Below the pieces are notes generated by a model. It had not been told where the DNA came from and did no database searches. It saw only the letters and a program-made list of their open reading frames with translations. This document shows positions 3,166 through 54,695 of a stretch of DNA of 64,000 bases, piece by piece. The DNA is taken from sequence record MN988522.1. One strand, given 5' to 3'. Both the position numbers and the translations under genes were made by a program. Positions within the stretch are counted from its first letter, which is position 1. Each line of letters starts with the position of its first letter.

Positions 3166-5414
3166 TGTCAATTGTAGTCGTCAATGGTCAGAACTTTGAT
3201 ATCGATACTCTGGATTTCTCAGAGAAGTCGAAGAGAGATGACTGGCATTCTAATGAAGGTAAGTTCATTAGGCTGCTGAAGCAAGACGTATACCTTACCT
3301 CCAAGATCTTGGAGTATGTCGTAGATAATGTGGACGATCTCATTGTAGGATATAAATCCTCTGACGGTCTTAGTCCATCGTACTTTCGTAAGTCTCTCCT
3401 CGTAGAGATTAATGAGATTCAAAGAAATGGTAAGATCCTAACAGACAATTTTATGAATAGTCTGTTCATCCGTTATAACTCTATCTTTGTTAAGGTTATC
3501 AAAGATCTTTCATCTGCAGTCAGCATTGACGAGAAGGATGAAGACTGGGTATGGACGTATGATAGCGATGGAAAGATCGTCTTTGATTATTCCCACGAAG
3601 CCCTCTCCCGTAGACGTACTCATCTGCAGAATTTCGACCGATCCATCCTTCCATTGGACTATACCAAGCTGGAAGATGTGTTTACCAAGCCTGAATTCAC
3701 TGCTTTATCCAATAAACGTGTGGTATGTTGGTCTTGTGGGTCGTATAAGACCACTTTGATCCGTCAATTCATTGTCAAACACTGGCTTGATGGCATCCTT
3801 TATGCGTGTTCTACGATCGAAGAAGTAAACCTTCTGACATATGATATTGCCTGCTTCATTGGAGAAGAGAATGTCTTCAAGTTGCATCACCAGATTGATA
3901 CTGATATCTACGCAGAGTACCATAAGAATCCTGAGTTTCTGAAAGAGAAGAGTGTTGTAGTCACTACGCACTCTCGTCTCATGAAGGATCCACCTTCGAT
4001 TCTTATTACTCAGATCGATGATCCACTAGGTGGAGATTCTCGACGTCAGTATGTTCTCATCGATGAGAAACCTCAGTTCTATGATCACATCAGCTTGAAC
4101 AATGATCAGGTACAGAATGTGATGAATCTGAGTACAGATCTATCTCCTCGTGAAGCTCAGAAGAAATTTCGAGAAGGTGTGAAGAATGCTTCAGGTATCT
4201 TCAAGTCTCTGAAGCATAACTCTGTTGAGTTGTTGAGTAAATCATCCGTCGATCGATCTGTCAACTTTCTTGACACGAGAGTGAATCCAACTACAGGTGC
4301 TGAGTATTTCGTACCCAACATCAACATGTTGAGAGCTGAGTTCGCAGTTAGTATGATTGTGAAACAGATCAACAAGAAGATCAAGATCGATCCGAACTAC
4401 GAGATCAAGAAAGATAAGAATCGTTACTTCTACAATCTAGGTGATCTGGAATTTAAGAACCTAATCATCTTTGATGGTACAGGTGATCTGATTCTCAATG
4501 AAAGTCCTGACTGGAAGATCATCAAAACTCCTGAGACTAGTTTTAATTTCAAAGGTAGTTTTAATGAGATTGAAAGTGATATTCGTAGAAGACTCGTAGG
4601 TAATGATCTCGAGCACTCCTCACAAGAATTCGATAAGATTATTCAATATCTTATTGGATTGACTGAGAAGCATGAGAAGATCTTCGTAGTCTCTTGGAAG
4701 GACATGAAAGGTAATGAAGATGATATGCCTAAGACAGGTGCTATCATTGACAATAATGTTCTTGCTAAGTTGACTGATCAGAGGATTGTCCAAGCGACTG
4801 ACGATCTGAATGCATACATTAAATTCAGGATTCCTCTAGAGCTTAGACATAAATTCGAGTTTACATACTACTTGTCAGGTAAAACTCGAGGTACGAATCG
4901 TTATGTTGATTGTGATGCAGTTGTATTGTTAGGTAGTTTCTATATTCCTAATCATGCTATTGCTATGATGAATGAACAGAATAATGCGAAGATGACTAAC
5001 GATATGCATTCAATGGCTGAAATCGTTCAAGCTATCTATCGTACGAGAGCTCGTAAGCTCAAACCTGTTGATGTTTATTATACATCTGATTGGAGTAAGC
5101 AACTCATTGTTGATACAATGAAGTATATTAATGCTCCGATCAGTGATGAATTCACATCAGACATACAGACTAAGATGAGATTGTTCTCAATGCAGTATGG
5201 AGTTAATATAACTCCGACTACGACTAAGCTAATTAAACTATTAGCATCTAAGTATTCTGATCTAATAGCAGGTGATACATCTGAATATCAAGTTCCACCT
5301 GATGAAGATAGTCGAGAATTTAAGAGAGGTATTCAAAATCTCTTGAATAAAGTTGATGAATTGAGATACGAGGATAAAAAGTATTCGAGATTCTTCAAGG
5401 TAATACCCGTTTAG
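3165..5414 (+). CDS. Divergent SF2 helicase-like protein (possible origin-binding type)
   Basis: Walker A variant CGSYKTT, Walker B LIDEKP, motif III-like IFDGTG, GKTRGTNRY, motif VI QAIYRTRAR. Confidence 0.65.
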   Translation: MSIVVVNGQNFDIDTLDFSEKSKRDDWHSNEGKFIRLLKQDVYLTSKILEYVVDNVDDLIVGYKSSDGLSPSYFRKSLLVEINEIQRNGKILTDNFMNSLFIRYNSIFVKVIKDLSSAVSIDEKDEDWVWTYDSDGKIVFDYSHEALSRRRTHLQNFDRSILPLDYTKLEDVFTKPEFTALSNKRVVCWSCGSYKTTLIRQFIVKHWLDGILYACSTIEEVNLLTYDIACFIGEENVFKLHHQIDTDIYAEYHKNPEFLKEKSVVVTTHSRLMKDPPSILITQIDDPLGGDSRRQYVLIDEKPQFYDHISLNNDQVQNVMNLSTDLSPREAQKKFREGVKNASGIFKSLKHNSVELLSKSSVDRSVNFLDTRVNPTTGAEYFVPNINMLRAEFAVSMIVKQINKKIKIDPNYEIKKDKNRYFYNLGDLEFKNLIIFDGTGDLILNESPDWKIIKTPETSFNFKGSFNEIESDIRRRLVGNDLEHSSQEFDKIIQYLIGLTEKHEKIFVVSWKDMKGNEDDMPKTGAIIDNNVLAKLTDQRIVQATDDLNAYIKFRIPLELRHKFEFTYYLSGKTRGTNRYVDCDAVVLLGSFYIPNHAIAMMNEQNNAKMTNDMHSMAEIVQAIYRTRARKLKPVDVYYTSDWSKQLIVDTMKYINAPISDEFTSDIQTKMRLFSMQYGVNITPTTTKLIKLLASKYSDLIAGDTSEYQVPPDEDSREFKRGIQNLLNKVDELRYEDKKYSRFFKVIPV

Positions 5415-5480
5415 AGTCGAGGCGGCCTAAGGAAGCTCTAATTCCCGTTCTAATCAACCGGGAATTTAGCGTTTCTTAAG

Positions 5481-5530
5481 TAATAATAAGAAGAGCAATA
5501 TAACCTTCTTATTATAATTATAATTATCAT
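5481..5530. repeat. AT-rich inverted-repeat element A (candidate origin)
   Basis: ATAATAAGAAG (5483-5493) / CTTCTTATTAT (5505-5515); its reverse complement resembles 45753-45799. Confidence 0.55.
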
Positions 5531-5543
5531 AGAAAGAAAGTCA

Positions 5544-5831
5544 ATGAAACTCACGAGGACTGAAGTTTATCAAATCAACGGTAAAGAGACAGCTCATATA
5601 GTAGCTAGCAAGTTTGCTATAGATGGATCACTCTTCAACAAGTTCTATCTTGAAGTTAATGACAAGGTGAGTGCTCCTAGATTGATTAGAGATTATATTG
5701 ATACTCTACAATTGACAATCCCTGATAAGGTTGTCTATATTCTTAGCTTAGAGAAAACTGAAATTAGGACTACAGATTTTCGAAAGAAGAATAATGAGCA
5801 AGGTAGGAGACCTACTCCAAAATCTGAGTGA
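5544..5831 (+). CDS. Hypothetical protein
   Basis: ORF track; GAAAGAAAG upstream. Confidence 0.6.
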   Translation: MKLTRTEVYQINGKETAHIVASKFAIDGSLFNKFYLEVNDKVSAPRLIRDYIDTLQLTIPDKVVYILSLEKTEIRTTDFRKKNNEQGRRPTPKSE

Positions 5832-6006
5832 TAAGTATGTAGCAAGTGATGAGCTTAGACAATCTCGTCTAGACATTTGTAATACTTGTCCATTCAGTGT
5901 GATGAAGAAATTCACTATTGAATTGAATATATGTAACAAGTGTGGATGTGTTATTAGTCAGAAGACTAAGATCAAGTCCTCAGAGTGTCCAATTGGTAAT
6001 TGGTGA
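5794..6006 (+). CDS. Small Cys-rich zinc-binding protein (DUF6171-like)
   Basis: RLDICNTC...CNKCGC..K....ECPIGNW pattern. Confidence 0.6.
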   Translation: MSKVGDLLQNLSDKYVASDELRQSRLDICNTCPFSVMKKFTIELNICNKCGCVISQKTKIKSSECPIGNW

Positions 6007-6120
6007 TCATGTTAATGGAACGTTCCATGGATGGAGGATCCACGATATACTATGGGAGACCAGAGATCGGACAACTGAGAGATCCTCAGAGTCCATTCAT
6101 TTTAGATAAAAGTGTGAGTT

Positions 6121-8488: not shown

Positions 8489-9448
8489 ATGATTATTTTA
8501 GGAGCAGGTCTGGCTGGTACATTAGCTGGACTAATTAATCCTCAGGCTTTGATCCTAGAAGGATCAAAGTCCGTTGACGATATGAGAATGCATAAAGCTG
8601 TTCTCAGATTCAGAGACGATAAGATCGGTAAATTGACTGGCGTACCTTTTACTAAGATCAAGGTCCGTAAGTCAATTCATATCGACAATAAAGACTATTT
8701 GGAATGCACTCCTCGACTAGCGAATATGTATTCGAAGAAGGTCACTGAAGGATATTCAGATCGTTCGATCTGGAATCTAGAGACTAGCGATCGATTCATT
8801 GCTCCTACGAATTTCCATGAGATTCTTATGAGCTATTGTGGTGATCGTATCAAGTTCAATCATAGTGTCACTGCAATCAAATCAGATAAGATTTATGCAA
8901 AAGATGATGTAACGATTGAACGAGATGATACTCCTATCGTTAGTACACTACCAATGCCTCTTCTAGGTCGTGTCATTGGTAAGCCATTCGACATCAAGTT
9001 CGAATCTAAGCAGATCAAGGTCTCTCGCTACAAAGTGAAAGGTGCCAAGATCAATCAAACGATCTATTTCCCAGGAACTGAGACACTTGCATATCGTGCA
9101 TCGATGGTTCAAGATATCTTGATTATCGAGAAGATTGAAGACGATAGTGGAGCGATTAACGATCGAGTTGATGATGCGTATATTATCAATGCGTTCGGTC
9201 TAGATACTCTTGATGTTGAATTCATTGAAGATGCATCCCAGCTTGGTAAGATCACAGCAATTGATGAGAAGGTTCGTAAGAATTTCATCTTCAATGTGAC
9301 ACGTGATCTGAATGTATACTCATTAGGTAAATTTGCATTGTGGAAAAATCACACGTTATTGGATGACGTTTATGATGACATATTCAAGATTAAAACTTAT
9401 ATGTCAGGTACTGATTACGATAGAATGAAATCAAGTTTTGGTAATTGA
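8489..9448 (+). CDS. FAD-dependent oxidoreductase (UDP-galactopyranose mutase/amine-oxidase superfamily-like)
   Basis: N-terminal IILGAGLAG dinucleotide-binding motif; C-terminal SLGKFALWK...LDDV resembles the GR..EY.Y.MD.V end of UGM-like flavoproteins. Confidence 0.7.
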   Translation: MIILGAGLAGTLAGLINPQALILEGSKSVDDMRMHKAVLRFRDDKIGKLTGVPFTKIKVRKSIHIDNKDYLECTPRLANMYSKKVTEGYSDRSIWNLETSDRFIAPTNFHEILMSYCGDRIKFNHSVTAIKSDKIYAKDDVTIERDDTPIVSTLPMPLLGRVIGKPFDIKFESKQIKVSRYKVKGAKINQTIYFPGTETLAYRASMVQDILIIEKIEDDSGAINDRVDDAYIINAFGLDTLDVEFIEDASQLGKITAIDEKVRKNFIFNVTRDLNVYSLGKFALWKNHTLLDDVYDDIFKIKTYMSGTDYDRMKSSFGN

Positions 9449-10098
9449 TGTTTTATGTTATCTATAAAATAACTAATAATATTAATGGTAAAATTTATAT
9501 CGGAGCTCATAGAACTCATAGTTTAACTGATACGTATATGGGATCCGGAAAATATATAAAAAGAGCTATTGATAAGTATGGTCGGAAAAACTTCTCGAAA
9601 GAAGTACTATTCAGTTTTGATAATTCAGAAGATATGTATAATAAGGAACGAGAAATCGTTAATGAAGAGTATCTTCAATCACATGGTCACTATAATTTAA
9701 GAGTAGGTGGTCTAGGTGGATTTGATCATATCAATGACAAAATTAGTAAAGATCCTGAATTTAAACAGTCTATTATAAAGAAGATTGCGAATTCTAATCG
9801 AGGGAAGCCTCGTACTGAAGAATTTAAATTAAAAGTATCTCTTCAGCATAAAGGTAAAACTGTTTCAGAAGAGTCTCGTAAGAAAATGAGTGATGCTCAT
9901 AAAGCGAGAAGATCTAATCCTAATTATGTCGACAAAAGAGTATGGTCTGAAGAGTCTAAACGTAGTTCAGGTAAACATCGTCGAGGATCTTTATGGATTA
10001 CTAATCCAGATCTTAAGATAAATAAATTCATTAAGACAGATCTTGAAACTTATCTATCAAATGGATGGGTCAAAGGTCGAGGTAGTTACAATGCATAG
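9445..10098 (+). mobile_element. Free-standing GIY-YIG homing endonuclease (Seg-like, NUMOD3-type repeats)
   Basis: YVIYKITNNINGKIYIG; YMGSG; SEESRKKMS repeats; more AT-rich than its flanks. Confidence 0.88.
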
Positions 10099-10380: not shown

Positions 10381-10953
10381 ATGAACCATATTATGTTAGA
10401 CTTTGAGACACTCGACACTAAACCTAGTGCAGTCGTGATGTCCGTAGGTATCGTTGCATTTGATCCCCTAGCTAACGATACCATTGAAACCCTCCGTAAT
10501 GATCCTCACAGAAAATTGTATCTAAATCTGCAATTCGATGATCAGATCAAAAATGGTCGTACTATATCAGAAGATACGATCAGATGGTGGTTCGAGGATA
10601 AACTTGCAGAATCTCGATCCAAACTCAAAAGTACTGATCTTGTAAGTACTCCATTAGCTCTGACTCTAATCGATAACTTTATTCTGAAACATGATATCAG
10701 ATACAGTTGGGGTAATGGATCTGACTTTGATAATGCGATCTATGACGATCTTCATCGTACGTTTAATCGTCTTAATCGCATTAAGTATAAGAACAAGAGA
10801 TGTGCTCGTACGATTTTCGGTATGACTAAGAAAAAGTATAATCCTAAGGATTATAATATTCTCGAACATGATGCAATTGAAGACTGTTACTTTCAAATCC
10901 TTCGTCTTCAAGACATGTTCAGAAATCATCTCACAGGAATCGATTTCTCATGA
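10381..10953 (+). CDS. DEDD 3'-5' exonuclease (T4 DexA-like)
   Basis: IMLDFETL...WGNGSDFD...HDAIEDC. Confidence 0.88.
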   Translation: MNHIMLDFETLDTKPSAVVMSVGIVAFDPLANDTIETLRNDPHRKLYLNLQFDDQIKNGRTISEDTIRWWFEDKLAESRSKLKSTDLVSTPLALTLIDNFILKHDIRYSWGNGSDFDNAIYDDLHRTFNRLNRIKYKNKRCARTIFGMTKKKYNPKDYNILEHDAIEDCYFQILRLQDMFRNHLTGIDFS

Positions 10954-11324
10954 TACTATTCATGCATGAAGATGGATCCTACTACAGTAGTGAAGAGATC
11001 TTCCAAGACATTCATACTAATATTGATACTTCAGATGAGGGATCTTTTCTGCTCAAGTATCTTGAGAGAGGATTTGAACCTCCTGCAGATGCTACCTCTG
11101 AGACAAAGTATGAGTATCATCTTGCCAAAATTGGATTTGGTCGATGGATCCGTAACTCATACGGTCTATGGCAAGAAGATAATCCTCATGTCATACTGAA
11201 TCCTTCTCCAAATGACGAAGGTATCATTGATCATCCACTATTTCCAGACAATCTTAGTGGCACCATAATTGATAGATTGATCCAGCACTATCAATCTAAA
11301 CTTCCACAGGTGGAAAATGTATGA
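10950..11324 (+). CDS. Conserved hypothetical protein (DUF6794-like)
   Basis: H..IGFGRWIRNSYGLW...HPLFPDNLSGTII pattern. Confidence 0.5.
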   Translation: MILFMHEDGSYYSSEEIFQDIHTNIDTSDEGSFLLKYLERGFEPPADATSETKYEYHLAKIGFGRWIRNSYGLWQEDNPHVILNPSPNDEGIIDHPLFPDNLSGTIIDRLIQHYQSKLPQVENV

Positions 11325-11619
11325 CCAAGTTTACTCTCGAGTAAGATGTACAAAGTACATTATTCGATATGTTACAGAAGGATATCCTTCGAGTATTCAT
11401 CTTGACTATACTGTAGTTCCAGTCGAAGGTGATCTCGTTCATGCTGAGGTTCATACGTCTCACTCTTTCGATATTAAAGAATTCGTAGTAGGTGCGAGTA
11501 CATATAATATGTCTCAAATTTTCGATACTCATGGAGAAGCTGAGATTGCAGCTAAGAAGAGAATTCGTAACGACTATGAAAAGACGAAATCTCTATTAGA
11601 ACGCTTCAATCTGGCATAA
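11317..11619 (+). CDS. Hypothetical protein
   Basis: Coupled ORF ending at the promoter motif. Confidence 0.6.
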   Translation: MYDQVYSRVRCTKYIIRYVTEGYPSSIHLDYTVVPVEGDLVHAEVHTSHSFDIKEFVVGASTYNMSQIFDTHGEAEIAAKKRIRNDYEKTKSLLERFNLA

Positions 11620-11627
11620 GCCTTCCT
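11601..11627 (+). promoter_or_regulatory. Phage promoter-like motif copy 4
   Basis: ACGCT at 11601 (partial), GCCTTCCT at 11620. Confidence 0.6.
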
Positions 11628-11657
11628 AATTGTCCAGCACCAAATAGGTAATTTATA

Positions 11658-12458
11658 ATGGTAAAGAGAGCCGTAGCTAAGGTACGACTTATTAACAATA
11701 CTAAGTTCGCAGACTCACTTCTCGTATTTAGTAAGAATACTCGATTGACGATGACTCCTGATATGTATGATCAGATTGTTAATCGAGAAGGTCAGTGGAC
11801 TGATGAAAAGATCAGTGAAGAACTTGACTACATGGCTAACACTATTCCTAGTAGCTGGGAATTTTGCGATTACTACTTCTTGATTTCAGGTGTGTCAAGA
11901 GCATTCACGCATCAGTTTGTTAGAAATCGTACTAACTCTTATGCACAACAGACAATGAGAGTTCTGGATATGTGCGAGTTTGATTATGTCTTTACTCGAC
12001 CATATACTGATCTTCCGACGGATCGAGATCCGACTAAGGAAGAACTCATTAATATGTCTTATGACTTCCATACTAATAAAGCATTGGAAGAAGTCCAGAA
12101 GAGATATAATGCTATGATTGAGGATGGCGTACCTGCAGAAGATGCACGAGGCATTCTCCCTACGAACATCGCTACCAACATTCTTGCGAAGATCAATCTT
12201 CGTACGTTTGCTGATATGGCTAAGTCTCGTACAGGTGGACGTACTCAAGGTGAGTACCAGATGATCATGAATCAGATGGTTGATGAAGTTCTGAAGGTAC
12301 ATCCATGGGCTGAGAAATTCTTCTTTAAGCAGGGTCGAGATTACTTCAAGGATCTTGAAGATCTATGTGCTGAAATCTTTGGGTCTGGTACAACCAAAGA
12401 GAATCTGCATACTAAGGGTCGATTCTTGAAAATTATCGACAAGATGCGTAAAGGTTAA
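11658..12458 (+). CDS. thyX: Divergent flavin-dependent thymidylate synthase (ThyX family)
   Basis: GVSRAFTHQFVRNRTNSYAQQTMR (variant of RHRx7S); EDARGILP; INLRT. Confidence 0.8.
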   Translation: MVKRAVAKVRLINNTKFADSLLVFSKNTRLTMTPDMYDQIVNREGQWTDEKISEELDYMANTIPSSWEFCDYYFLISGVSRAFTHQFVRNRTNSYAQQTMRVLDMCEFDYVFTRPYTDLPTDRDPTKEELINMSYDFHTNKALEEVQKRYNAMIEDGVPAEDARGILPTNIATNILAKINLRTFADMAKSRTGGRTQGEYQMIMNQMVDEVLKVHPWAEKFFFKQGRDYFKDLEDLCAEIFGSGTTKENLHTKGRFLKIIDKMRKG

Positions 12459-14428: not shown

Positions 14429-15151
14429 ATGACAACGAATACTAGTGAGAAATCTCTGAAGAATGACATTGCTGTCAGTTCTCCAAATAAGAAGAGACTG
14501 ACATTCGCTATCGACTTTGATGGCGTTATTTATCCATACAAGAATGGATATAACAATGGGCTCATGTCTGAAGATCCCATTCCAGGTGCACGAGATGCAC
14601 TGGTTCACCTTCGCAATGAAGGTCATAAGATCGTAATCAACACCTGTCGAGGTGCTGTAGAAGATCTTAAATCTTATTTCAATCTCCATGACATTCCATT
14701 CGATGAAATCAATGAGAACTCAGATAACTATGAGGACTCAAATAAGGGTAAACCTTTTGCTGATTATTACATCGATGATCGAGCTATTCGATTCGAAGGC
14801 GATTGGTCCCTCACATTAGATGAGGTACGTCGCAAGAGATTCCCATGGTTCATTAAGTCTGAGAATAAGATTGCAGCAGATCTTATGAATGACTCAGCAG
14901 AATTATATCGACAGCGTAATCTTGTTTATGGCGATTCATATCGACGTCACGGTGAGATTATGGCTAAACTATTTCCTAATGGTGTAACCTTGAAGACAGC
15001 TGAAGATTTTAATCGATTCGGCATTCTTAACATGAAGATATCTAAGGTTACTAGATATTGTCAGAATTTTGAGAAGGGTGGTCATCTTGACTCAGTGATC
15101 GATGATGGTGTTTATACCTTCATGCTCGCTGAGCTTGATATGTCCAAGTAG
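14429..15151 (+). CDS. Fusion of a HAD-family phosphatase and a DUF6378/MazG-like nucleotide pyrophosphatase-like domain
   Basis: N-terminal FAIDFDGVI...KPFADYYIDDRA (HAD motifs I and IV); C-terminal RNLVYGDS...KISKVTRY...HLDSVIDDGVY. Confidence 0.75.
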   Translation: MTTNTSEKSLKNDIAVSSPNKKRLTFAIDFDGVIYPYKNGYNNGLMSEDPIPGARDALVHLRNEGHKIVINTCRGAVEDLKSYFNLHDIPFDEINENSDNYEDSNKGKPFADYYIDDRAIRFEGDWSLTLDEVRRKRFPWFIKSENKIAADLMNDSAELYRQRNLVYGDSYRRHGEIMAKLFPNGVTLKTAEDFNRFGILNMKISKVTRYCQNFEKGGHLDSVIDDGVYTFMLAELDMSK

Positions 15152-15532: not shown

Positions 15533-16030
15533 ATGACTAAATCAATTAAAGTTAAAGTAATTAATGAATCTACTACCAATGCTCTTCCAGCTTATGAGAC
15601 TGAAGGTTCCGCAGGTATGGACCTCAGAGCTCATATCAATGGCGACAGTCCATTCTCGAAGATTGTTAAGATCGAGAACAAAGAAGAGCATGTAATTGAT
15701 ATCGCTCCAGGTGAGCTACGTCTCATCTCTACAGGACTTAAAGTTGAAATTCCTGCAGGTTATGAACTTCAAGTTCGTCCACGTAGTGGATTAGCTTATA
15801 AGAATATGGTAACAGTACTAAATAGTCCTGGCACCATTGACTCTGATTATCGAGGAGTAGTCGGAGTACTTTTATTCAATCATCATCCTAGTACAGTTTT
15901 CAGAGTCAGGAATGGTGAACGTATTGCTCAGGCAGTTTTTGCTGAGTATGTACGTGCTGAATATGATAATGTAACTGATCTGAGTGCCACTGATCGAGGA
16001 GAAGGTGGATTCGGAAGTACTGGTAAATAA
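15533..16030 (+). CDS. dut: Trimeric dUTPase
   Basis: AGMDL, RSGLA, GTIDSDYRG, RIAQ, RGEGGFGSTG (motifs I-V). Confidence 0.97.
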   Translation: MTKSIKVKVINESTTNALPAYETEGSAGMDLRAHINGDSPFSKIVKIENKEEHVIDIAPGELRLISTGLKVEIPAGYELQVRPRSGLAYKNMVTVLNSPGTIDSDYRGVVGVLLFNHHPSTVFRVRNGERIAQAVFAEYVRAEYDNVTDLSATDRGEGGFGSTGK

Positions 16031-16043
16031 TTTAGGAAATATT

Positions 16044-17027
16044 ATGCGTAATATCTTTGAACCAAGAACTGCTCCTAAGCCATACGAATATCCTGACGTT
16101 ATGGGCTTCAAGGATGCAATCCGTCATAGTTACTGGTTGCATACTGAGTGGAACTTTGAAGCTGATAAACAAGACTTCCATGTCAAGTTAAATGACGTAG
16201 AACGTTCACTCGCTAAGAATGGTCTACTCACTATCTCTCAGATCGAAATAGCTGTTAAGAAGTTCTGGGGACGGCTTGGTGATAGATTTCCTAAGCCTGA
16301 GATTGAAGCAGTAGGTGCTACATTCGCTGAGTCTGAAGTCAGACACTTTGACGCCTATTCGCATCTTCTAGAAATTCTAGGTCTGAATAGTGATTTCGAT
16401 CAACTACTTCAGAATCCTGTAATCCAAGGTCGAGTTGATTATCTCGAGAAATACATCAAGGGTGGATCCAAGAATTCGGATCAGAACTTTACGATGACCT
16501 TGGCACTATTCTCGATCTTTATCGAGAATGTAAGTCTCTTCTCGCAGTTCCTGATTATCAAGTCGATTCATAAGCACCGTCAGGTACTTAAGGATATTGA
16601 CAATGTTATCCAGGCTACTCAGCAAGAGGAAGTGATCCATGCTCTGTTTGGCATGCAGATCATCCAGTATGTTAAAGACGAGAATCCTGATTGGTTTAAT
16701 GAGGATTTCTATGTCAAACTTTATGAAGCATCCAGAAAAGCTTATGACTCTGAGTGCAAGATTATTGATTGGATCTTCGAGAACGGTGAGACTACCTATC
16801 TGAAGAAGGATACTGTCAAGGAATTCATCAAGGATAGATTCAATGAGAGTCTGACCATGATTGGAGGAAAGGAAATATTCCCAGTCGATAAGTCTGTACT
16901 ATCGAGTATCCAGTGGTTCAAGGATGAGATCGTAGCTGAAATTCAGGTTGACCAATTTAATAAGAAGTCAATTAATTACGCTAAGAAAATGCAATCTATT
17001 ACAGCAGAAGATCTTTTCAATGACTAA
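16044..17027 (+). CDS. nrdB: Ribonucleotide reductase beta subunit, class Id-like (start at ATG 16044)
   Basis: SQIEIAVKKFW, ESEVRHFDAY (ExxHxxxY), IENVSLFSQF, EEVIH, SITAEDLF end. Confidence 0.95.
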   Translation: MRNIFEPRTAPKPYEYPDVMGFKDAIRHSYWLHTEWNFEADKQDFHVKLNDVERSLAKNGLLTISQIEIAVKKFWGRLGDRFPKPEIEAVGATFAESEVRHFDAYSHLLEILGLNSDFDQLLQNPVIQGRVDYLEKYIKGGSKNSDQNFTMTLALFSIFIENVSLFSQFLIIKSIHKHRQVLKDIDNVIQATQQEEVIHALFGMQIIQYVKDENPDWFNEDFYVKLYEASRKAYDSECKIIDWIFENGETTYLKKDTVKEFIKDRFNESLTMIGGKEIFPVDKSVLSSIQWFKDEIVAEIQVDQFNKKSINYAKKMQSITAEDLFND

Positions 17028-18684
17028 TGAGTACGCTGAATACAGATGGCTCAACGAGATAGGATACGAATTCCTATCTCGTGACTATCTGCTTGAGAAT
17101 GAAACATGGGACGACAAGGTAAATGTTATCGTAGGTCGTGCTGCTGAAATCCTAGGTGATAAGGTACCCGACTTCTTCGAGAAGTTTAAGGGATATTATC
17201 AGAAGGGATACTATTCTTGGTCCAGTCCGATTATCTCGAACTTTGGGACCTCCAGAGGTCTTCCGATTAGCTGCTTCGGTAGTTATATTGAAGACTCAAT
17301 GGAATCGATTCTGTACACGTTTGCAGAAGTAGGAATGATGTCTAAGATTGGTGGAGGTACGTCTGGTACCTTTGACCAACTTAGACATAAGGGTGCTGAG
17401 ATCCGTGGAAACGGTAAGAGCTCAGGTCCAGTTCACTTTATGAGACTGTTTGATACGAATATCAATGTTGTCAGTCAAGGTAAGACTCGTAGAGGTAGCT
17501 TTGCTGCTTATATGAGTGTTGCTCATCCAGACATTATGGAACATCTCACTCTACGTAGTGAAGGCAGTCCAATTCAAGATCTTTCATTCGGTGTCACTAT
17601 TCCTGAAGGATGGATGCAGTCCATGCTTGATGGTGACAAGGATAAGAGAAAGATCTGGGCTCGTATCCTAGAGGTACGTGCAAATACTGGTTATCCTTAC
17701 ATCATGTTCTTGGATAACGTTCAGAACGGTAGACCAGACGTTTACAAAGATTACGATATGAGAATCACTCATTCGAATCTATGTTCTGAGATCATGCTTC
17801 CAGATAGTCCAGATGAGTCATTCGTCTGTGATCTATCTTCGATGAATATTCTTTACTACGATGAGTGGAAAGATACTGATGCAGTTGAGTATCTGACTTA
17901 CTTCCTCGATGCAGTTATGACTGACTTCATCGAGAAAGCCAGAAATATTAAGTTCATGGAACGTGCAGTAAGATTTGCTGAACGTCATCGTGCTCTAGGT
18001 ATTGGTCAGTTCGGATGGCATAGCTATCTTCAGAGCAAGATGATTCCATATGAATCTATTGAAGCTAAGATGCATGTCATTCAGATCGCTCGTAGAATCA
18101 AGGAGAAGGCTTATGCAGGATCAGCTAATCTAGCCACATGGTTCGGTGAGCCTGAACTCCTTAAGGGATATGGTCGACGTAACACTACGCTGATCGCTAT
18201 TGCTCCTACGAAGTCCTCAGCATTCATCCATGGTCAAGCATCAGAAGGTATTGAACCTTATCAATCCAATGCTTATATTAAGGATCTTCAGAAGGGTAAG
18301 TATACCTTTAAGAATCCTTATCTGAAGAAGTTACTAGCTGAGAAGGGATACGATAACGATCAGGTTTGGTCAGGTATCCTCAAGAATCGTGGATCTGTCC
18401 AGAATCTAGAGTTCTTGACTCCAGAAGAGAAGAGTGTCTTCAAGACATTCTCTGAAATCTCTGCTCGTGATGTTATCATCATGGTAGCTCAACGTCAGAA
18501 GTATGTTGATCAAGGTCAGTCTACGAACATCATGATCCATCCTAAGACTCCAATCAAGGATGTTCATGAACTGTATGTTGAAGGATGGAAGCTTGGTATC
18601 AAGTCATTCTATTATCAGTACAGTATCAATGCTGCTCAGGAATTCTCGAGAGATCTGGTTATCTGCTCGAGTTGTGAGGGTTAA
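17020..18684 (+). CDS. nrdA: Ribonucleotide reductase alpha subunit, short form without ATP cone (start at ATG 17020)
   Basis: SSPIISNFG, PISCF, QGKTRRGS, SNLCSEI, IAPTKSS, C-terminal CSSCEG. Confidence 0.96.
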   Translation: MTNEYAEYRWLNEIGYEFLSRDYLLENETWDDKVNVIVGRAAEILGDKVPDFFEKFKGYYQKGYYSWSSPIISNFGTSRGLPISCFGSYIEDSMESILYTFAEVGMMSKIGGGTSGTFDQLRHKGAEIRGNGKSSGPVHFMRLFDTNINVVSQGKTRRGSFAAYMSVAHPDIMEHLTLRSEGSPIQDLSFGVTIPEGWMQSMLDGDKDKRKIWARILEVRANTGYPYIMFLDNVQNGRPDVYKDYDMRITHSNLCSEIMLPDSPDESFVCDLSSMNILYYDEWKDTDAVEYLTYFLDAVMTDFIEKARNIKFMERAVRFAERHRALGIGQFGWHSYLQSKMIPYESIEAKMHVIQIARRIKEKAYAGSANLATWFGEPELLKGYGRRNTTLIAIAPTKSSAFIHGQASEGIEPYQSNAYIKDLQKGKYTFKNPYLKKLLAEKGYDNDQVWSGILKNRGSVQNLEFLTPEEKSVFKTFSEISARDVIIMVAQRQKYVDQGQSTNIMIHPKTPIKDVHELYVEGWKLGIKSFYYQYSINAAQEFSRDLVICSSCEG

Positions 18685-28253: not shown

Positions 28254-28576
28254 AGTCTAGTAATCTATCTGCTGTCATAGAGCTCATGGATCTGAAAGAG
28301 AAGCTTAGACATCTAAGTGACTCAGAACATGGATTCATTAGAGTCGAGGTAGGTCAAGATAGTAGATGTAACTTCTTCAAAGATGGAAGTGCAAGTGTAG
28401 AAAGTGATTACGATGACGACGATGATGATCGTGTGATCCTGTCTAAGTCTAAGTCTAATTCTAAGCACAAGAAGATATCTTTCGACATCTACACTCGCAT
28501 TATACAGGTATTGCAGGACTCTATCTCGGACTGCAACGTGGCTCTCAAACAACTAGGAGTTGAGATTGATGACTAA
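28250..28576 (+). CDS. Hypothetical protein
   Basis: GTGA overlap. Confidence 0.55.
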   Translation: MKSSNLSAVIELMDLKEKLRHLSDSEHGFIRVEVGQDSRCNFFKDGSASVESDYDDDDDDRVILSKSKSNSKHKKISFDIYTRIIQVLQDSISDCNVALKQLGVEIDD

Positions 28577-29684
28577 TAATTCATTTGCAGATCGTCTTTC
28601 TAAGGTAACTACAGTACCTCCTCCAGCACCTGTAGGTAATCTACCTGTAGCTAAGCCAGCAGGGTTCTCAGGGATCAAGTCTAATACCAATTCTGATCTC
28701 GTTTACAAGAGTGTTGTTACCAAGGATGACATCGAGAATCTTGGTAAGGATATTGGTCGATCTGTAGGTGAAACTACTGAGAAGATCGTTCAGAAGGTTG
28801 CTCTCAGTAACTTCGGTGATCTAGGAGCTATCCTCGCTCAAGTTCAAGCTGAAGCTGATAAGCTGGATCCTAATGCACAATTCTCAGGTGTAGGTGGATG
28901 GATTAAGTCCAAATTCAAGGACATTAAATCCGTACTCATTCAACAGTTGAATAGCGCTAGTAAAGTATTTGATGATCTTGAAGTGAAGATCGCTGACAAT
29001 ATCGCTGTTCATCAAGAGTGGGTAAAGGATTTGGATCTCCTATACAAGGAGAATTACAATCACTTTAAAGCTATTAATGCACTCATCGTCAAGGCTACTG
29101 AGTGGAAGGCTATGATCGAAACTCAGATCAAGAATCTGCCTCCGATCGATCCTAATGATCCTGAAGCTATGATGAAGGGTGAGCTCATTCGAGAACTCGA
29201 ATCTCTGAAGAACCGTGCGGCTATCAAGCTCGACAACTTCACGAGACTTCGTATTATCTCGGAGAGTAATGCTCCTAAGATCAAGAGTCAGTCTGAGACA
29301 TCTGAAACGACTATCATGACTCTTCGTGATCTCATGGAACAAGCCATTCCGATGATCAAGATGGAATTTGCACTCTATCTCCAATCAATGGCATCTAAGT
29401 CTTCGCAAGATCTGATCAAGAATGGTCGTAATCTTGCTAATCAGACGCTGAAGAGATCTGCTGATGCAGCACATGATGCAGCTATCACTTCAGCTACTTC
29501 TCTGAACGACTCTATCGTTCAGACAGATACTCTGGATCACATCCGTAAGAAGATGCTTGATACTGTGCAGAATGTTCGTAAGATCCAGAGTGATGCACAG
29601 GCTAAACGAGATGCAGATGCTAAGACTCTCAAGGAGAGTTCTGCAGCTTATCTCACTGAATTGCAGAAGAACAACGCTATCTAA
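28560..29684 (+). CDS. telA: TelA-family toxic anion resistance protein (start probably MTNNS)
   Basis: Coiled-coil protein; LGDLG...LDP...GWIKSKF...IDDLE-like pattern; first gene of the Ter cluster. Confidence 0.75.
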   Translation: MRLMTNNSFADRLSKVTTVPPPAPVGNLPVAKPAGFSGIKSNTNSDLVYKSVVTKDDIENLGKDIGRSVGETTEKIVQKVALSNFGDLGAILAQVQAEADKLDPNAQFSGVGGWIKSKFKDIKSVLIQQLNSASKVFDDLEVKIADNIAVHQEWVKDLDLLYKENYNHFKAINALIVKATEWKAMIETQIKNLPPIDPNDPEAMMKGELIRELESLKNRAAIKLDNFTRLRIISESNAPKIKSQSETSETTIMTLRDLMEQAIPMIKMEFALYLQSMASKSSQDLIKNGRNLANQTLKRSADAAHDAAITSATSLNDSIVQTDTLDHIRKKMLDTVQNVRKIQSDAQAKRDADAKTLKESSAAYLTELQKNNAI

Positions 29685-29702
29685 CGAGGATAAATCATAG
29701 AT

Positions 29703-30416
29703 ATGACTAACGCTATCACACTCGACCTCACCAAGAAGTTTGAACTCAATCTCGAGAAGGCTGGTATCACTCAGATTCCAGTTCTGGAGACTCGTCTCGC
29801 AGTAGATCGTTCGGGTTCTATGCAGGAAGAATTCGATGCAGGATGGGTTGATAAGACGATCAATCTCTTCATCGTAGCAGCTATGAAGTTCGATGACAAT
29901 CAGTCTCTGGAAGTCGGATTCTTCAATACTGAATTCACTCAGACTCCTGAAGCTCAGGCTAGTGATGTAGGTACGTATCTTAAGAGCAAGGCTCGTAATA
30001 TTCGTCCGACATCTGGTACGTATTATGCTCCGATCATCGAGAATCTCGAGTCTAAGATGTCAGCCTCTGCTCCGATTCAGGAGAAGAAGTCTGGATTCTT
30101 CGGATTCTTCAAAGGAGACTCTTCTGCTCCAGCATCTAAGGAACGAGTAGCTAAGAACAAGGCATACGTTGGTGTTATCACTGACGGTGATCCAGGTGAC
30201 AAGCGCAGCTTCGAGTCTGCACTTGCTAATACTTCTGGCGATACATTCTACCAGTTCATCGCTATCGGTAATCAGATCGATGCCAACTATCTGAAGGGAC
30301 TGTCGAATCAGTACAAGCATGTCTCCTTCATTCATCTGAAGGATCCTTACAAGGTGACTGACGACTCCTTCTACGAGAACCTCTGCAATGAGAAATTTGT
30401 AGCCTGGACGAAGTAA
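29703..30416 (+). CDS. vWA domain protein (TerF/TerY-associated type)
   Basis: LAVDRSGSM, GTYYAP, VITDGDP, YQFIAIG. Confidence 0.88.
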   Translation: MTNAITLDLTKKFELNLEKAGITQIPVLETRLAVDRSGSMQEEFDAGWVDKTINLFIVAAMKFDDNQSLEVGFFNTEFTQTPEAQASDVGTYLKSKARNIRPTSGTYYAPIIENLESKMSASAPIQEKKSGFFGFFKGDSSAPASKERVAKNKAYVGVITDGDPGDKRSFESALANTSGDTFYQFIAIGNQIDANYLKGLSNQYKHVSFIHLKDPYKVTDDSFYENLCNEKFVAWTK

Positions 30417-30422
30417 TACTCT

Positions 30423-30460
30423 AAGTAGTAGCTTCGTACCAGCGGAGCTACTACTTTTCA
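30423..30460 (+). terminator. Intrinsic terminator
   Basis: AAGTAGTAGCT/AGCTACTACTT stem followed by TTCA. Confidence 0.7.
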
Positions 30461-30486
30461 TTAATCTGGTAATCCTAGAGGGTTAA

Positions 30487-31524
30487 ATGTTTAAATATTT
30501 CGGTGGATCGTTCATTTTCGCAGCTGCAGCATTGATTGGACTGTATCTCTTTACAGGCAATCCTGCTGCTCTAGTGACAGCAGTTGTCCTCTCGATCGTA
30601 GAGGTAGCTGTTAGCTTCGATAATGCTATCGTAAATGCATCAATCATGAAGACGATGTCTCCTTTCTGGAAGAAGATGTTCGTTACAGTCGGTATGTTGT
30701 TTGCAGTAGGATTCATGAGACTATACTTCCCGATTCAGATCGTATCAGCAATTGGAGGTATCTCACTTCATGAAGCTGGTCATCTAGCTCTTGCTGAGCC
30801 TGATCGATTCTCTCACATTCTTATCGAGTCTCATCACATCGTAGCTGGGTTTGGTGGTGCATTCCTTATGCTCGTAGCTTTGAAGTACTTTATCAATGCT
30901 GAGAAGGATGTCCACTGGGTACACGCTATTGAAGCACCTCTAGCATCTCTCGGTAAGCTTGATGAAGTCCAAGTTCTGATCGTAGCAGTTGTATCGTATA
31001 TCCTTTCTCGCTATCTCGGAGATCATGGTACAGAGTTCTTCTATGCTGCTTTGATCGGTATCGGTACACATATTGTAGTTGATCTGATCAAAGAAACTCT
31101 GAGTCATATCGATACGTTTCTTGCTAAGGGAGCAGATGTAGCAGTCAAGGGTGGTCTTGGTGCATTCATCTATCTTGAAGTACTTGATGCATCCTTCTCG
31201 TTCGATGGAGTCATCGCTGCATTCGCTATCACCAATCAGATTGCAGTTGTAGCTGCCGGTCTTGGTATCGGTGCTATGTTCGTACGTAGTCTGACTCTCA
31301 TGCTTGATGACAAGGATACTCTCACAACTTTCCGATATCTTGAGAGTGGTGCATTCTGGGCTATCGGTGGACTTGCTGCATTCATGTACATCAGCACACT
31401 TGTACATGTCTCAGAGTGGATTATCGCAGGATTCTCTGCTGTAGTCATTCTCGTATCGTTCCTACATTCGATTAAGGCTAACAAGGATGAAGAACTCCTA
31501 CAGCCTGTCCTCGAAATTCATTAA
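30487..31524 (+). CDS. DUF475 / TerC-like integral membrane protein
   Basis: EVAVSFDNAIVNA, GMLFAVGFMRLYFP, YLEVLDASFSFDGVIAAFA, GAMFVRSLT, YLESGAFWAIG. Confidence 0.92.
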   Translation: MFKYFGGSFIFAAAALIGLYLFTGNPAALVTAVVLSIVEVAVSFDNAIVNASIMKTMSPFWKKMFVTVGMLFAVGFMRLYFPIQIVSAIGGISLHEAGHLALAEPDRFSHILIESHHIVAGFGGAFLMLVALKYFINAEKDVHWVHAIEAPLASLGKLDEVQVLIVAVVSYILSRYLGDHGTEFFYAALIGIGTHIVVDLIKETLSHIDTFLAKGADVAVKGGLGAFIYLEVLDASFSFDGVIAAFAITNQIAVVAAGLGIGAMFVRSLTLMLDDKDTLTTFRYLESGAFWAIGGLAAFMYISTLVHVSEWIIAGFSAVVILVSFLHSIKANKDEELLQPVLEIH

Positions 31525-31553
31525 CATTAACTCCTAGATAAGGATTTGGAGAA

Positions 31554-32138
31554 ATGATCGTGCTCGACCTCAATAAAGACGCAGGTATCGTACTGGATCT
31601 CAGCAAGGAAGATCCGTCTCTTGAAACTCTCAAGATCAAGCTGGACTGGAATCCTCATCCAGTTCATGGTGCTAGCCTGACGGATGGCTTCGATCTGGAT
31701 ATCTTCGCATATGTTCTCAATGAACAAGGTAAGATCACTAGCGGTTCTGATGTTGTATTCTTCAACAACAAGAATTTCGCTAATGGTGCTATTGTTCTTC
31801 CTAAGGACAACCGTACTGGTGAAGGTGATGACGATGAAGAATTGCTCATCACCACGTCTAAGATTCCTGCAGACAAGAAGTCTGTAGCTATCTATGTGAC
31901 CATTCACAAGGCTACAGAACGTGGTCATCACTTCGGTATGGTATCTGGAGCATCTCTTCAGTTCATCAATGCTGACTCTGGTAAGATTATTGCCAAGTAT
32001 GACCTGACTGCCAACTACTCTGGTAATACTGCATTCTTTGGTGGTATCCTTTCTGTTGAGAATGGTAAGGGTAAGTTCCAATCGAATGGTGAGGCAGCAG
32101 ACGCTGATCCTAATCAGATCGCTCAGTTGTACGTCTAA
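31554..32138 (+). CDS. terD: TerD-family stress protein
   Basis: LDW...FDLD...VVFFNN...DNRTGEGDDDEE...HHFGMV. Confidence 0.92.
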   Translation: MIVLDLNKDAGIVLDLSKEDPSLETLKIKLDWNPHPVHGASLTDGFDLDIFAYVLNEQGKITSGSDVVFFNNKNFANGAIVLPKDNRTGEGDDDEELLITTSKIPADKKSVAIYVTIHKATERGHHFGMVSGASLQFINADSGKIIAKYDLTANYSGNTAFFGGILSVENGKGKFQSNGEAADADPNQIAQLYV

Positions 32139-49903: not shown

Positions 49904-50803
49904 ATGAACGATTTTAATGTAATCCTTACAGGTTCTGCTGGTTACATTGGAAGCATCGTTGGCGATCGTCTACTGAAATCCAATTCGATTGATTTGGAGA
50001 CAGTAGACGTCGTCTCTGACGTTCTTCCAGTAGATACTATCTTAACTGAAGTTGGTAATCTATCCAACAAGTCATCTGATGTCCTTGTTCATCTTGCTGC
50101 AAAGATCTCAGTAGTCGAATCTCATAAGCAAGCTCGTCAGTACTACGAGAACAATTGTAGTCAATTCCATGAGATGTTGAATGATCGTGGTAACTATTTC
50201 AAGCATGTTATCTATGCATCCTCTTTCTCGATTTATGATTCTGATTTGAGTATCTATCCTCAGTCTGTCTATGCATCCACCAAATACGAAGGTGAATGGA
50301 TTCTCAAGAGATGGGCTCAGATGACGAATCGAGATTATTCAATCCTACGATTTGCCAATCCAATTGGCGTTAGTCAATCACTTCACTCTCATATTGCAGA
50401 CCGTATTCAATCGAGCTATGCTAATGTTATGTGGAGACTTGCTCGATGCAAATTACTAGGTGAGATGTTCTACATTCATGATCTACCTGGTATGACACGT
50501 GATTTTTATCCCGTTGAATGGATTGGATACGCTATCGATTGGATCGCGAAGAATGGTCCCGTAGGTACTGTAAATCTAGGTAGTGGTAAGCCTGTATCGG
50601 TTATGGATCTTCTTCAGCATATCTGTGAGAAGTATAATATCAGTTACAAATATGTTCTACCACCTGAAGGTACTGCTCTAGGTATTACCAAGAAGGTTGA
50701 TGTATTCAAAGAAGGTATTCCTGATTTTGATACATACGATCCAGTTGTATATTGTGAGAAGTCGTTTTTAGATTATCTATCGTTGATTCAGAACGCGAAC
50801 TAA
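49904..50803 (+). CDS. NAD-dependent NDP-sugar epimerase/dehydratase (GalE-like)
   Basis: TGSAGYIGS, HLAA, YASS, YASTK (YxxxK), LRFANPIG, TRDF, NLGSG. Confidence 0.9.
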   Translation: MNDFNVILTGSAGYIGSIVGDRLLKSNSIDLETVDVVSDVLPVDTILTEVGNLSNKSSDVLVHLAAKISVVESHKQARQYYENNCSQFHEMLNDRGNYFKHVIYASSFSIYDSDLSIYPQSVYASTKYEGEWILKRWAQMTNRDYSILRFANPIGVSQSLHSHIADRIQSSYANVMWRLARCKLLGEMFYIHDLPGMTRDFYPVEWIGYAIDWIAKNGPVGTVNLGSGKPVSVMDLLQHICEKYNISYKYVLPPEGTALGITKKVDVFKEGIPDFDTYDPVVYCEKSFLDYLSLIQNAN

Positions 50804-50821
50804 CGCTAGATTAGCCTTCCT
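50795..50821 (+). promoter_or_regulatory. Promoter-like motif copy 13
   Basis: GCGAA at 50795, GCCTTCCT at 50814. Confidence 0.7.
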
Positions 50822-50830
50822 TCTCGTAGA

Positions 50831-51031
50831 ATGAATAAGAGGATCACCATGAAAGATCTACGTGAATTCAAATCTAAGCTTGATGCTAAGTTCGATACTC
50901 AGACATCTTGGGGTAAGAATCAGATCAAGCAAGTCATCAATGATACTTATATTGAAATCATTGAAAGTAAAGTAGAAGGTACTATCGAGCAGTCGACTCC
51001 TTCTAATCGTATCGACGAAGACTCTAAGTAA
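50831..51031 (+). CDS. Hypothetical protein
   Basis: ORF track; start possibly at the second Met after AGAGG. Confidence 0.55.
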   Translation: MNKRITMKDLREFKSKLDAKFDTQTSWGKNQIKQVINDTYIEIIESKVEGTIEQSTPSNRIDEDSK

Positions 51032-51053
51032 TTTTCTAGTCAAGGTTAACAAT

Positions 51054-53112: not shown

Positions 53113-53123
53113 GGAGTCTCGAC

Positions 53124-53668: not shown

Positions 53669-53676
53669 GAGGTAAT

Positions 53677-54642: not shown

Positions 54643-54646
54643 TCTT

Positions 54647-54686
54647 AAGGTCTACTAGAAGAGATTCTAGTAGACCTTTTCTTTTT
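54647..54686 (+). terminator. Intrinsic terminator (GAGA loop)
   Basis: Perfect 14-bp stem AAGGTCTACTAGAA/TTCTAGTAGACCTT followed by TTCTTTTT. Confidence 0.85.
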
Positions 54687-54695
54687 GAGGATAAA

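Follow-up and report, generated by a model that had tools for sequence, protein, structure and literature searches.

A virus-only ThyX clade in Rhizobium phage RHph_TM40 and its relatives as a candidate source of hypermodified thymidine

What does a ThyX protein make once it has lost several of the residues by which its family is recognized? This question is raised by the ThyX gene of Rhizobium phage RHph_TM40 (TM40; Kleczkowskaviridae, Cuauhnahuacvirus), whose genome of 207,431 bp is deposited as MN988522.1. We analysed a window of 64,000 nucleotides from this record, in which a coordinate equals the record coordinate minus 62000. Positions given below are those of the window unless the record is named. 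The gene in question is the following:

11658..12458, + strand: ThyX of the clade type described below, 266 aa with ATG start (EVB94_195 / QIG71666.1), annotated 'thymidylate synthase ThyX'

An earlier note on this DNA had described the product as a ThyX homologue with RNRx7T and with Val for Tyr, and had suggested that the scaffold is repurposed to make a modified pyrimidine. The motif is as described. Residues 84-102, THQFVRNRTNSYAQQTMRV, contain R89-N90-R91-x7-T99-M-R101-V102, so that the ThyX signature RHRx7SxRY is replaced by RNRx7TMRV, with both arginines of the RHR element and the later arginine retained.

The TM40 protein is a genuine member of the Thy1/ThyX family, and its altered motif is not there by chance. 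It matches the Pfam profile Thy1 (PF02511) with an E value of 6.4e-31 and 108.1 bits (cut-off 24.8) over profile positions 2-191 of 191, scores 103.9 bits against the NCBIfam thyX equivalog TIGR02170 (cut-off 87.9) and is assigned to PHROG 85, 'thymidylate synthase'. The Pbunavirus homologue reaches 87.4 bits against TIGR02170, slightly below the same cut-off. The AlphaFold2 model, calculated with 64 clade sequences, has a pLDDT of 94.1 and a pTM of 0.90. Foldseek relates this model to ThyX of M. tuberculosis, T. maritima and T. thermophilus and to PolB, with E ~1e-10 and TM scores by target of 0.66-0.81, at sequence identities of 16-20% to the solved structures among these matches. Two antisense open reading frames (135 aa and 45 aa) lie inside thyX at 11898-12362 on the minus strand and appear 'conserved' in 56-75 related loci by six-frame BLAST. 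This apparent conservation arises because the sense frame is conserved and gives no evidence for an overlapping gene.

To compare active sites, the clade profile was aligned to T. maritima ThyX chains, and residues are given in T. maritima numbering. The mutant chains 4gtf (H53A), 3g4a (S88A) and 8rep (Y91F) served as numbering control: in each, the mutated residue falls precisely in the aligned column, and these columns align to I, T and V of the clade. In TM40, H79 corresponds to N90, S88 to T99 and Y91 to V102. The earlier list of altered residues was right about these His, Ser and Tyr changes and fell short in number, as H53 is replaced by I63, N85 by A96 and N169 by D186. Other changes are R74 to H85, E86 to Q97, L87 to Q98, G89 to M100 and H178 to R195. 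Retained in TM40 are E58, Q75, R78, R80, S83, Y84, R90, R147, N163, R165, R174, Q180 and E182. Expressed in TM40 numbering, the dUMP and FAD ligands Q86, R89, R91, R101, R164, N180, R182 and R191 are all present and mostly invariant in the 64 clade sequences; E68, Q86, R89, R91, R164, R182 and R191 are invariant in this set down to 29% identity. The clade retains all substrate and FAD arginines, namely R78, R80, R90, R147, R165 and R174. The RHR motif is known to bind the FAD phosphates and the ribityl chain (PMC6514825).

The residues that are lost belong to a defined polar network. In T. maritima ThyX, the imidazole of H53 stacks against either reduced flavin or folate and is held in place by hydrogen bonds from Y91 and N85. 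The H53-Y91 bond stabilizes the 'OFF' conformation of the flavin, and mutation of Y91, which has been proposed as general acid, slows flavin oxidation in the methylation reaction by ~1000-fold (PMC11940539). In TM40, the H53-N85-Y91 network is absent and reads I63, A96 and V102. The clade has swapped this network, and usually H79 as well, for aliphatic or small residues and has kept the nucleotide-binding arginines. The invariant equivalent of R174 argues for a uracil mononucleotide rather than a cytosine nucleotide as the likely substrate, if its role in established ThyX structures carries over.

The altered active site is not private to TM40. All 120 nearest homologues, found on phage contigs at 57-66% identity, read R[S/T/N]R-x7-T-x-R-V. 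The His at H79, the Tyr at Y91 and H53 are missing in all of these and in most of 150 distant representatives. At 39% identity, the ThyX proteins of Pbunavirus, Wifcevirus and Myosmarvirus read RTR-x7-T-S-R-A. Among 1.84 billion representatives we found 2,222 relatives, and the best 150 of them mostly follow the clade pattern, with few intermediates. Scanning prokaryotes with one genome for each species yielded 79 ThyX loci. Cellular loci account for 73 of them (Bathyarchaeia, Methanomassiliicoccales, Coriobacteriia, Deferribacter, Thermincola), several on chromosomes of 1-2.5 Mb; they keep H53, H79, S88 and Y91 and read THQLVRHR..SY.QQSQRY, with His at the H53 position. The other six, in genome bins, carry a phage-type ThyX. 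Loss of the network of the I-A-V type is seen in 96 of 209 sequences, all viral or in phage-type bins, and the canonical combination in 77 of the 209, including the 73 cellular loci. The changes R74 to H, E86 to Q, L87 to Q and H178 to R are uninformative because they are common to cellular ThyX proteins, presumably the thymidylate synthases of these cells. Specific to the viruses are H53 to I/V/L, S/T/N to Ala at position 85, Y91 to V/T/I/A/L, H79 to T/S/N (with His retained in about one fifth of the clade) and N169 to Asp/Glu, where the cellular relatives carry His.

We calculated a FastTree tree of 156 rows, from which 53 of the 79 genome-locus rows were omitted as redundant (the first eight and every fourth thereafter were kept). 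The minimum number of state changes on this tree is 1 for H53, 2 for Y91, 7 for H79, 10 for position 85 and 23 for S88. H53 and Y91 were therefore lost in one old event at the base of the viral clade. Because this single basal event leaves one independent pair, a test for co-evolution of H53 and Y91 has no power. Inside the clade, S, T and A occur at S88 and T, S, N and H at H79. The earlier note had taken Ser to Thr and His to Asn as the telling changes. These are the positions that flip 23 and 7 times within the clade; the informative change is the loss of H53, N85 and Y91 en bloc. In the comparison with bona fide ThyX that had been suggested, TM40 falls into a group apart from the cellular enzymes. 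From these sequences, the altered ThyX forms a large, monophyletic, virus-only clade.

Clade ThyX is also set apart by its neighbours, which in TM40 are encoded at

8489..9448, + strand: FAD-dependent oxidoreductase, 319 aa, phrog_4828 'unknown function', with N-terminal GAGLAG Rossmann motif
14429..15151, + strand: two-domain protein, 240 aa, N-terminal HAD phosphatase with motif I D29-x-D31 intact, C-terminal four-helix DUF6378 domain at ~145-240

In 80 viral loci from IMG/VR, a HAD protein is found in 78, the DUF6378 helical domain in 73 and a FabG-like SDR in 54. The genes follow the order ThyX, HAD, DUF6378 on the same strand, with fusion or fission between the last two: they are adjacent genes in most uncultured contigs and are fused in TM40, Pbunavirus, Wifcevirus and Myosmarvirus. 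The phrog_4828 flavoprotein (~320 aa, with a conserved GxGxxG) lies upstream of ThyX in 56 of the 57 viral loci whose upstream sequence extends to 3.5 kb or more, on the same strand and at a median distance of 349 bp. Flavoprotein, HAD and DUF6378 all occur in 6/6 phage-type genome-bin loci, and each of them is absent from the 73 canonical cellular loci. In isolate phages, flavoprotein and clade ThyX are equally spread, with 292 records each for Pseudomonas and 27 each for Escherichia, and both also occur in phages of Serratia, Rhizobium, Xanthomonas, Pantoea, Vibrio and Ralstonia. Only five genes are common to TM40 and Pbunavirus LBL3 (E < 1e-4). Three of these are the module, and the flavoprotein is the strongest match (LBL3 ORF65, E 9e-56). 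Only four TM40 genes recur across the 84 loci, namely ThyX, the flavoprotein, HAD-DUF6378 and a DnaQ-like exonuclease. The three module genes have moved horizontally as a set. TM40 has no SDR homologue. We also considered non-orthologous displacement, with the flavoprotein next to a ThyA-type enzyme; no such pair was found, and the spread of the flavoprotein mirrors that of clade ThyX.

The partners point towards sugars and nucleotides. From ESM-Atlas features and the structure of a close relative, the flavoprotein is predicted to be an FAD protein of the amine-oxidase, protoporphyrinogen-oxidase or UDP-galactopyranose-mutase type. Among its neighbours in these comparisons are flavoproteins of lipopolysaccharide or sugar biosynthesis fused to NeuB or to glycosyltransferases. 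The helical domain of ~100 aa corresponds to Pfam DUF6378 in 23/35 members (best E 1.3e-05), and its model is a four-helix bundle with a pLDDT of 92.6. In AFDB, this model fits best to a cluster named 'dATP/dGTP diphosphohydrolase N-terminal domain' (TM 0.86, E 3.9e-06), and weak matches carry the name 'nucleotide modification associated domain'. We label the domain MazG/MazZ-like because of this AFDB cluster and Pfam DUF6378; against solved structures, Foldseek and VIA-align return generic helical hairpins and nothing specific.

In TM40 the module is not contiguous, in part because of an inserted homing endonuclease:

9448..10098, + strand: Seg-like homing endonuclease (record annotation), between the flavoprotein gene and ThyX

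Throughout the TM40 record, gene clusters are split by many homing endonucleases of the Seg-like, HNH and GIY-YIG types. The relatives TM30 and TM3_3_6 show an alignment gap at 10-14 kb (90% coverage, two pieces), consistent with mobile insertions. Additional genes come from uncultured relatives and Wifcevirus: a phrog_8203 protein of 396 aa (locus L005, 10723-11913) and a family-less protein of 183 aa (locus L007, 8520-9071) each lie in a ThyX-HAD-SDR block and may be lineage-specific parts of the pathway. A separate case are the Cluster-D actinophages, such as Mycobacterium phage Chill (MK524498.1; locus L176, 1098-6861), which encode a 'ThyX-like' protein of 366 aa. Its motif is intermediate (RQR-x7-S-T-R-F), Leu replaces H53, and the C-terminus is extended by ~130 aa. 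The Chill gene adjoins DnaE and a FabG-like SDR, as in the Pbunavirus relatives, and its locus is without flavoprotein, HAD and DUF6378.

Modified thymidine has been described in Pbunaviruses, which carry this module. Using liquid chromatography-mass spectrometry, Yee et al. (bioRxiv 10.1101/2025.03.31.646159; PMC12191111) report new thymidine-derived nucleosides of 362 and 390 Da in Pbunavirus F8 and 14-1, which replace about one quarter of T and lie in a TG motif. Restriction digests also indicate modified DNA in F8 and 14-1, and Pbunavirus DNA is cleaved by EcoRI, HindIII, XbaI, DraI and BsaI (PMC12191111). These authors interpret the adducts as sugar alcohol and cyclic pentose; they report no homologues of known modification genes, and their account leaves the biosynthetic genes unnamed and ThyX unmentioned (PMC12191111). 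According to an independent preprint, failure of Nanopore sequencing on native DNA is specific to Pbunavirus, and PCR rescues it. In phages with known thymidine hypermodification, the C5 carbon is set at the stage of the nucleotide pool by a phage enzyme of a thymidylate synthase family (PMC8989533). By mass arithmetic, 362.33 equals 5-hydroxymethyl-deoxyuridine (5-hmdU) + tetritol - H2O and 390.34 equals 5-hmdU + pentose - H2O. Alternative fits are dU + pentose - H2O + 2H for 362.33 and dU + hexose - H2O for 390.34. The Pbunavirus masses show the pattern of an O-substituted 5-hmdU, and the dU-based alternatives fit equally. The complete LBL3 genome yields no ThyA (best E 0.096), and its one ThyX belongs to the clade. 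Wifcevirus is restriction-resistant by no known mechanism. In phiW-14 and SP10, the hypermodified base and the remaining thymine both arise post-replicatively from incorporated 5-hmdU. Given this route, a partial replacement of T without residual hmdU is compatible with a hydroxymethylase as the sole enzyme of thymidylate-synthase type. 5-hydroxymethyl-dUMP (5-hmdUMP) is a reported product of ThyX reactions quenched with acid, and for this reason such chemistry is feasible on ThyX.

The TM40 genome could supply the nucleotide side of such a pathway. It has ~39% GC and encodes DHFR, dUTPase, the alpha and beta subunits of ribonucleotide reductase (RNR), dCMP deaminase and an HD-type 5'-deoxynucleotidase adjoining PolA (record 148996-152996). 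Two of these loci lie close to the module:

15533..16030, + strand: canonical trimeric dUTPase (Dut; NF001862 169 bits, cut-off 103), a dUMP supplier for the ThyX step, outside the conserved module
16005..18684, + strand: ribonucleotide reductase beta and alpha (record annotation), nucleotide-supply context

The earlier statement that the window holds no ThyA-type hydroxymethylase extends to the whole 207-kb genome, in which six-frame phmmer with E. coli ThyA finds none (best E 3.2). A six-frame search of the genome gives no second ThyX, and no ThyA lies within +-10 kb of ThyX in the 84 loci. This gene set is the classical setting for a phage thymidylate synthase, and it equally suits a hydroxymethylase that consumes dUMP.

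Taking these results together, we rate the chances as about even that clade ThyX acts as a one-carbon transferase on C5 of dUMP, probably by making 5-hmdUMP, and so supplies the hypermodification of thymidine. Repurposing is supported in the following ways. A virus-only clade has lost residues that are conserved in every cellular ThyX sampled. Its ThyX genes are near-obligately linked to a sugar-type flavoprotein and to a pair resembling nucleotide phosphatase and pyrophosphatase, and the three genes travel horizontally together. The only studied carriers show thymidine hypermodification at a C5 carbon or unexplained restriction resistance, with no other candidate for the C5 step. In the proposed mechanism, N5 of the reduced FAD would take the methylene of methylenetetrahydrofolate and pass it to dUMP, as in ThyX. 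The exocyclic-methylene intermediate would then be hydrated and released as 5-hmdUMP instead of, or besides, being reduced to dTMP. The resulting 5-hmdU would enter DNA and be decorated or converted after replication, a step that would fit the O-substituted 5-hmdU-type thymidines of Pbunavirus and the route established in other thymidine-hypermodifying phages. DUF6378 and HAD may act on the nucleotide pool, either to clear dTTP and dTMP or to supply dUMP, and the flavoprotein may act in a sugar branch or in a redox step at the DNA level. TM40 virion DNA would then carry a modified thymidine. The module is previously undescribed and is a strong candidate for the thymidine-hypermodification pathway of the Pbunavirus type. 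We put it at somewhat under an even chance that flavoprotein, ThyX and HAD/DUF6378, with the SDR of many relatives, are the missing core of this O-substituted 5-hmdU hypermodification, which would make ThyX the first flavin-dependent dUMP hydroxymethylase.

The repurposing idea of the earlier note is thus supported in part, and for reasons other than those first given: the virus-only clade, the module and the modified T of Pbunaviruses speak for it, whereas sequence cannot prove it and a dTMP synthase is a serious alternative. The note had reasoned by analogy with the ThyA paralogue gp42 of T-even phages; the R174 equivalent argues for uracil and not cytosine, and no glucosyltransferase was found.

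Several points weigh against a hydroxymethylase. Literature searches gave no biochemical data on any member of the clade, and we know of no hydroxymethylase in the ThyX family. In Pfam and PHROGs comparisons, which among the 383 genes of TM40 covered those of the module and their neighbours near ThyX, no 5-hmU DNA kinase, pyrophosphorylase or transferase/glycosyltransferase was recognised. Loss of Y91 should impair methylene transfer whichever product is made and therefore cannot by itself discriminate between products. Neighbours of the pyrophosphatase and phosphatase kind are found next to canonical ThyX proteins as well. In L5, the DUF6378-like gp55 stands beside a metallophosphoesterase, gp54, at 4.7 kb from the canonical, biochemically characterised L5 ThyX, and in Carmen17 a ThyX with canonical motif is paired with a MazG-like enzyme. 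Such a neighbour alone is therefore not diagnostic, and the idea that HAD and NTP-pyrophosphatase mark thymine exclusion is weakened by the same two phages. As a side observation, L5 gp55 (NC_001335.1; locus L013, 6033-6503, minus strand) is annotated 'phosphofructokinase', and its match to the DUF6378 profile (E 2.3e-07) suggests that this annotation is wrong and that the protein is probably a MazG/MazZ-like helical nucleotide-binding protein.

The same evidence can be read as that of an ordinary dTMP synthase, an explanation to which we give a good but less than even chance. Here the hydrophobic I-A-V cluster would be an alternative way of flavin gating, possibly with the Asp/Glu at N169 as substitute acid, and the neighbours would serve the nucleotide pool as NTP pyrophosphatase and phosphatase or, without any link to ThyX, alter thymine within the DNA. 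The dUMP and FAD arginines, Q75 and E58 are all invariant, and TM40 ThyX passes the equivalog cut-off, which counts for this reading and against a hydroxymethylase. So does its place as the sole thymidylate-synthase-family gene in an AT-rich phage with dUTPase, RNR, dCMP deaminase and DHFR, a setting for dTMP synthesis. The drift at S88 and H79 is as expected of non-essential residues, and the crystallised S88A variant (3g4a) retains activity. Since three quarters of the T in Pbunavirus are canonical and modified T is confined to TG, a step at the DNA level is needed anyway and could act on T directly. Set against this are the ~1000-fold cost of a Y91 mutation in T. maritima and the conservation of H53, H79, S88 and Y91 in all chromosomal ThyX proteins sampled, which indicates that these residues are under selection when dTMP must be made. 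Furthermore, the sugar-type flavoprotein and HAD-DUF6378, to which the clade is near-obligately linked, have no role in plain dTMP synthesis, and Pbunaviruses need a handle of the C5-hydroxymethyl type and have neither ThyA nor homologues of known modification genes to provide it.

We regard a change of carbon donor or acceptor as improbable. The donor would be a free aldehyde or aldose bound as iminium on flavin N5, so that the side chain is built at the nucleotide level, or the acceptor would be UMP or dCMP. The loss of the folate-stacking H53 and both dU-based mass fits would agree with another donor, neighbouring HAD phosphatase and SDR could free or reduce sugars, and PolB (4p5b) shows that the acceptor can change on this scaffold. 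ThyX is able to work with a carbinolamine flavin derived from formaldehyde (PDB 7ndw, 7ndz; PMC8316439). Specificity for a TG motif, however, cannot come from the nucleotide pool, and the adducts were read by the Pbunavirus authors in other terms; for the acceptor, R174 and the other invariant uracil and phosphate ligands indicate a uracil mononucleotide. Least probable by far is that the protein is a dead or regulatory relic, for example a subunit that binds nucleotide or flavin. Several residues of the textbook motif are indeed missing, but the active-site arginines are under strong purifying selection across the very diverse clade of 64 sequences, the open reading frame is intact in all relatives and the structural model is confident.

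A literature search on the DNA of TM40 or Kleczkowskaviridae gave nothing useful. A Z-genome with 2-aminoadenine was considered and is not supported: a PurA-like protein outside the window (record 10642-11892), a highly divergent member of the adenylosuccinate-synthetase family, lies far under both cut-offs, with 101 bits against 402 for PurA and 37.7 against 300 for PurZ, and thus counts neither as normal PurA nor as recognised PurZ. A cluster of the tellurite-resistance type at 28569-32138 encodes a TelA-like 'toxic anion resistance' protein, a vWA protein, a DUF475 (TerC-like) membrane protein and TerD. Outside the window, at record 4546-6061, a ComF-like phosphoribosyltransferase (PF15610, E 9e-46) is found with a HAD hydrolase. 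Together with the Ter cluster this is reminiscent of the Ter-associated 'nucleoside-like metabolite' systems reportedly proposed by Anantharaman, Iyer and Aravind. Sugar-related genes follow the gyrase genes at 49904-58781 and could feed a sugar-type modification of DNA or surface:

49904-50803: GalE-like NAD-dependent epimerase
51054-53112: two Pfam-less proteins of 395 and 292 aa
55065-55793: DUF72 protein
57288-58190: polysaccharide pyruvyl transferase
58191-58781: 196-aa protein, common to three clade-ThyX contigs

The epimerase, pyruvyl transferase, DUF72 protein and the two hypothetical proteins were considered as glucosylation genes of the window and gave no DNA-glycosyltransferase signal. 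An MreB-like actin-family ATPase is annotated at 53677-54642.

ThyX is a drug target whose mechanism is still debated, and a natural clade without H53, Y91 and the RHR histidine informs this debate whichever product is made. If the product is 5-hmdUMP, nature would have derived a pyrimidine hydroxymethylase from a thymidylate synthase a second time and independently, on a flavin scaffold, as convergent counterpart of the ThyA-derived enzymes. RHph_TM40, Wifcevirus, Myosmarvirus and hundreds of uncultured phages that bear the module would then have hypermodified thymidine. The module would offer candidate genes for the thymidine hypermodification of Pbunaviruses, which rank with the phages used most often in Pseudomonas therapy, and it could explain the restriction resistance of Wifcevirus. 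It would further provide a sequence marker for modified DNA in uncultured phages, consisting of I/V/L at H53, Ala at position 85, an aliphatic side chain at position 91 and a flavoprotein neighbour. Such a marker would bear on sequencing, on cloning and on predictions of defence and host range.

The best known reference is canonical ThyX, represented by T. maritima TM0449, M. tuberculosis Rv2754c and gp48 of L5/D29. TM40 ThyX shares its Pfam and TIGRFAM family, its fold (TM by target 0.69-0.81), the same dUMP and FAD arginines, Q75 and E58, and carbon transfer via flavin N5 is presumably the same. In contrast to the canonical enzymes, TM40 lacks the motif His and Ser, the following Tyr, H53 and the polar residue at 85, and unlike cellular ThyX its gene sits in a flavoprotein/HAD/DUF6378 module. 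L5/D29 gp48 was considered as experimental anchor for the clade; it carries the canonical RHRx7SxRY and is therefore uninformative in this respect. Closest in kind are the ThyX proteins of Pbunavirus (LBL3 ORF59, F8), Wifcevirus (WFC_00068) and Myosmarvirus (Spe5P4), which belong to the same clade with I at H53 and have the same partners. In LBL3, the one such genome checked in full, ThyX is the sole gene of a thymidylate-synthase family, as in TM40. These are gamma-proteobacterial myoviruses of ~65 kb with the module beside DnaQ/DnaE and often an SDR, whereas TM40 infects Rhizobium, has a genome of 207 kb and encodes dUTPase, RNR, dCMP deaminase and DHFR; modified DNA has been demonstrated in Pbunavirus only.

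By analogy, the role proposed for TM40 ThyX would be that of the ThyA-family hydroxymethylases, T4 gp42 acting on dCMP and the dUMP enzymes of SPO1, phiW-14, ViI and M6 (PMC8989533). These enzymes stop at the hydroxymethyl stage and supply the handle for hypermodification, and in both cases the gene is the only one of a thymidylate-synthase family. ThyA and ThyX have unrelated folds and no homology (PMC7824862), and the chemistry proposed for TM40 would proceed via flavin N5 and not via a cysteine adduct. TM40 ThyX matches only Thy1, so that homology to the ThyA fold (PF00303) was not found. Recruitment of the ThyX fold beyond housekeeping dTMP synthesis is known from PolB, the UMP/dUMP C5-methylase of polyoxin biosynthesis in Streptomyces cacaoi (4p5a/4p5b), which is a top structural match (E ~1e-10, TM 0.77) at weak sequence similarity (profile E 2.2e-05). 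PolB changes the acceptor to UMP and still methylates, whereas the TM40 enzyme, as proposed here, would change the fate of the intermediate.

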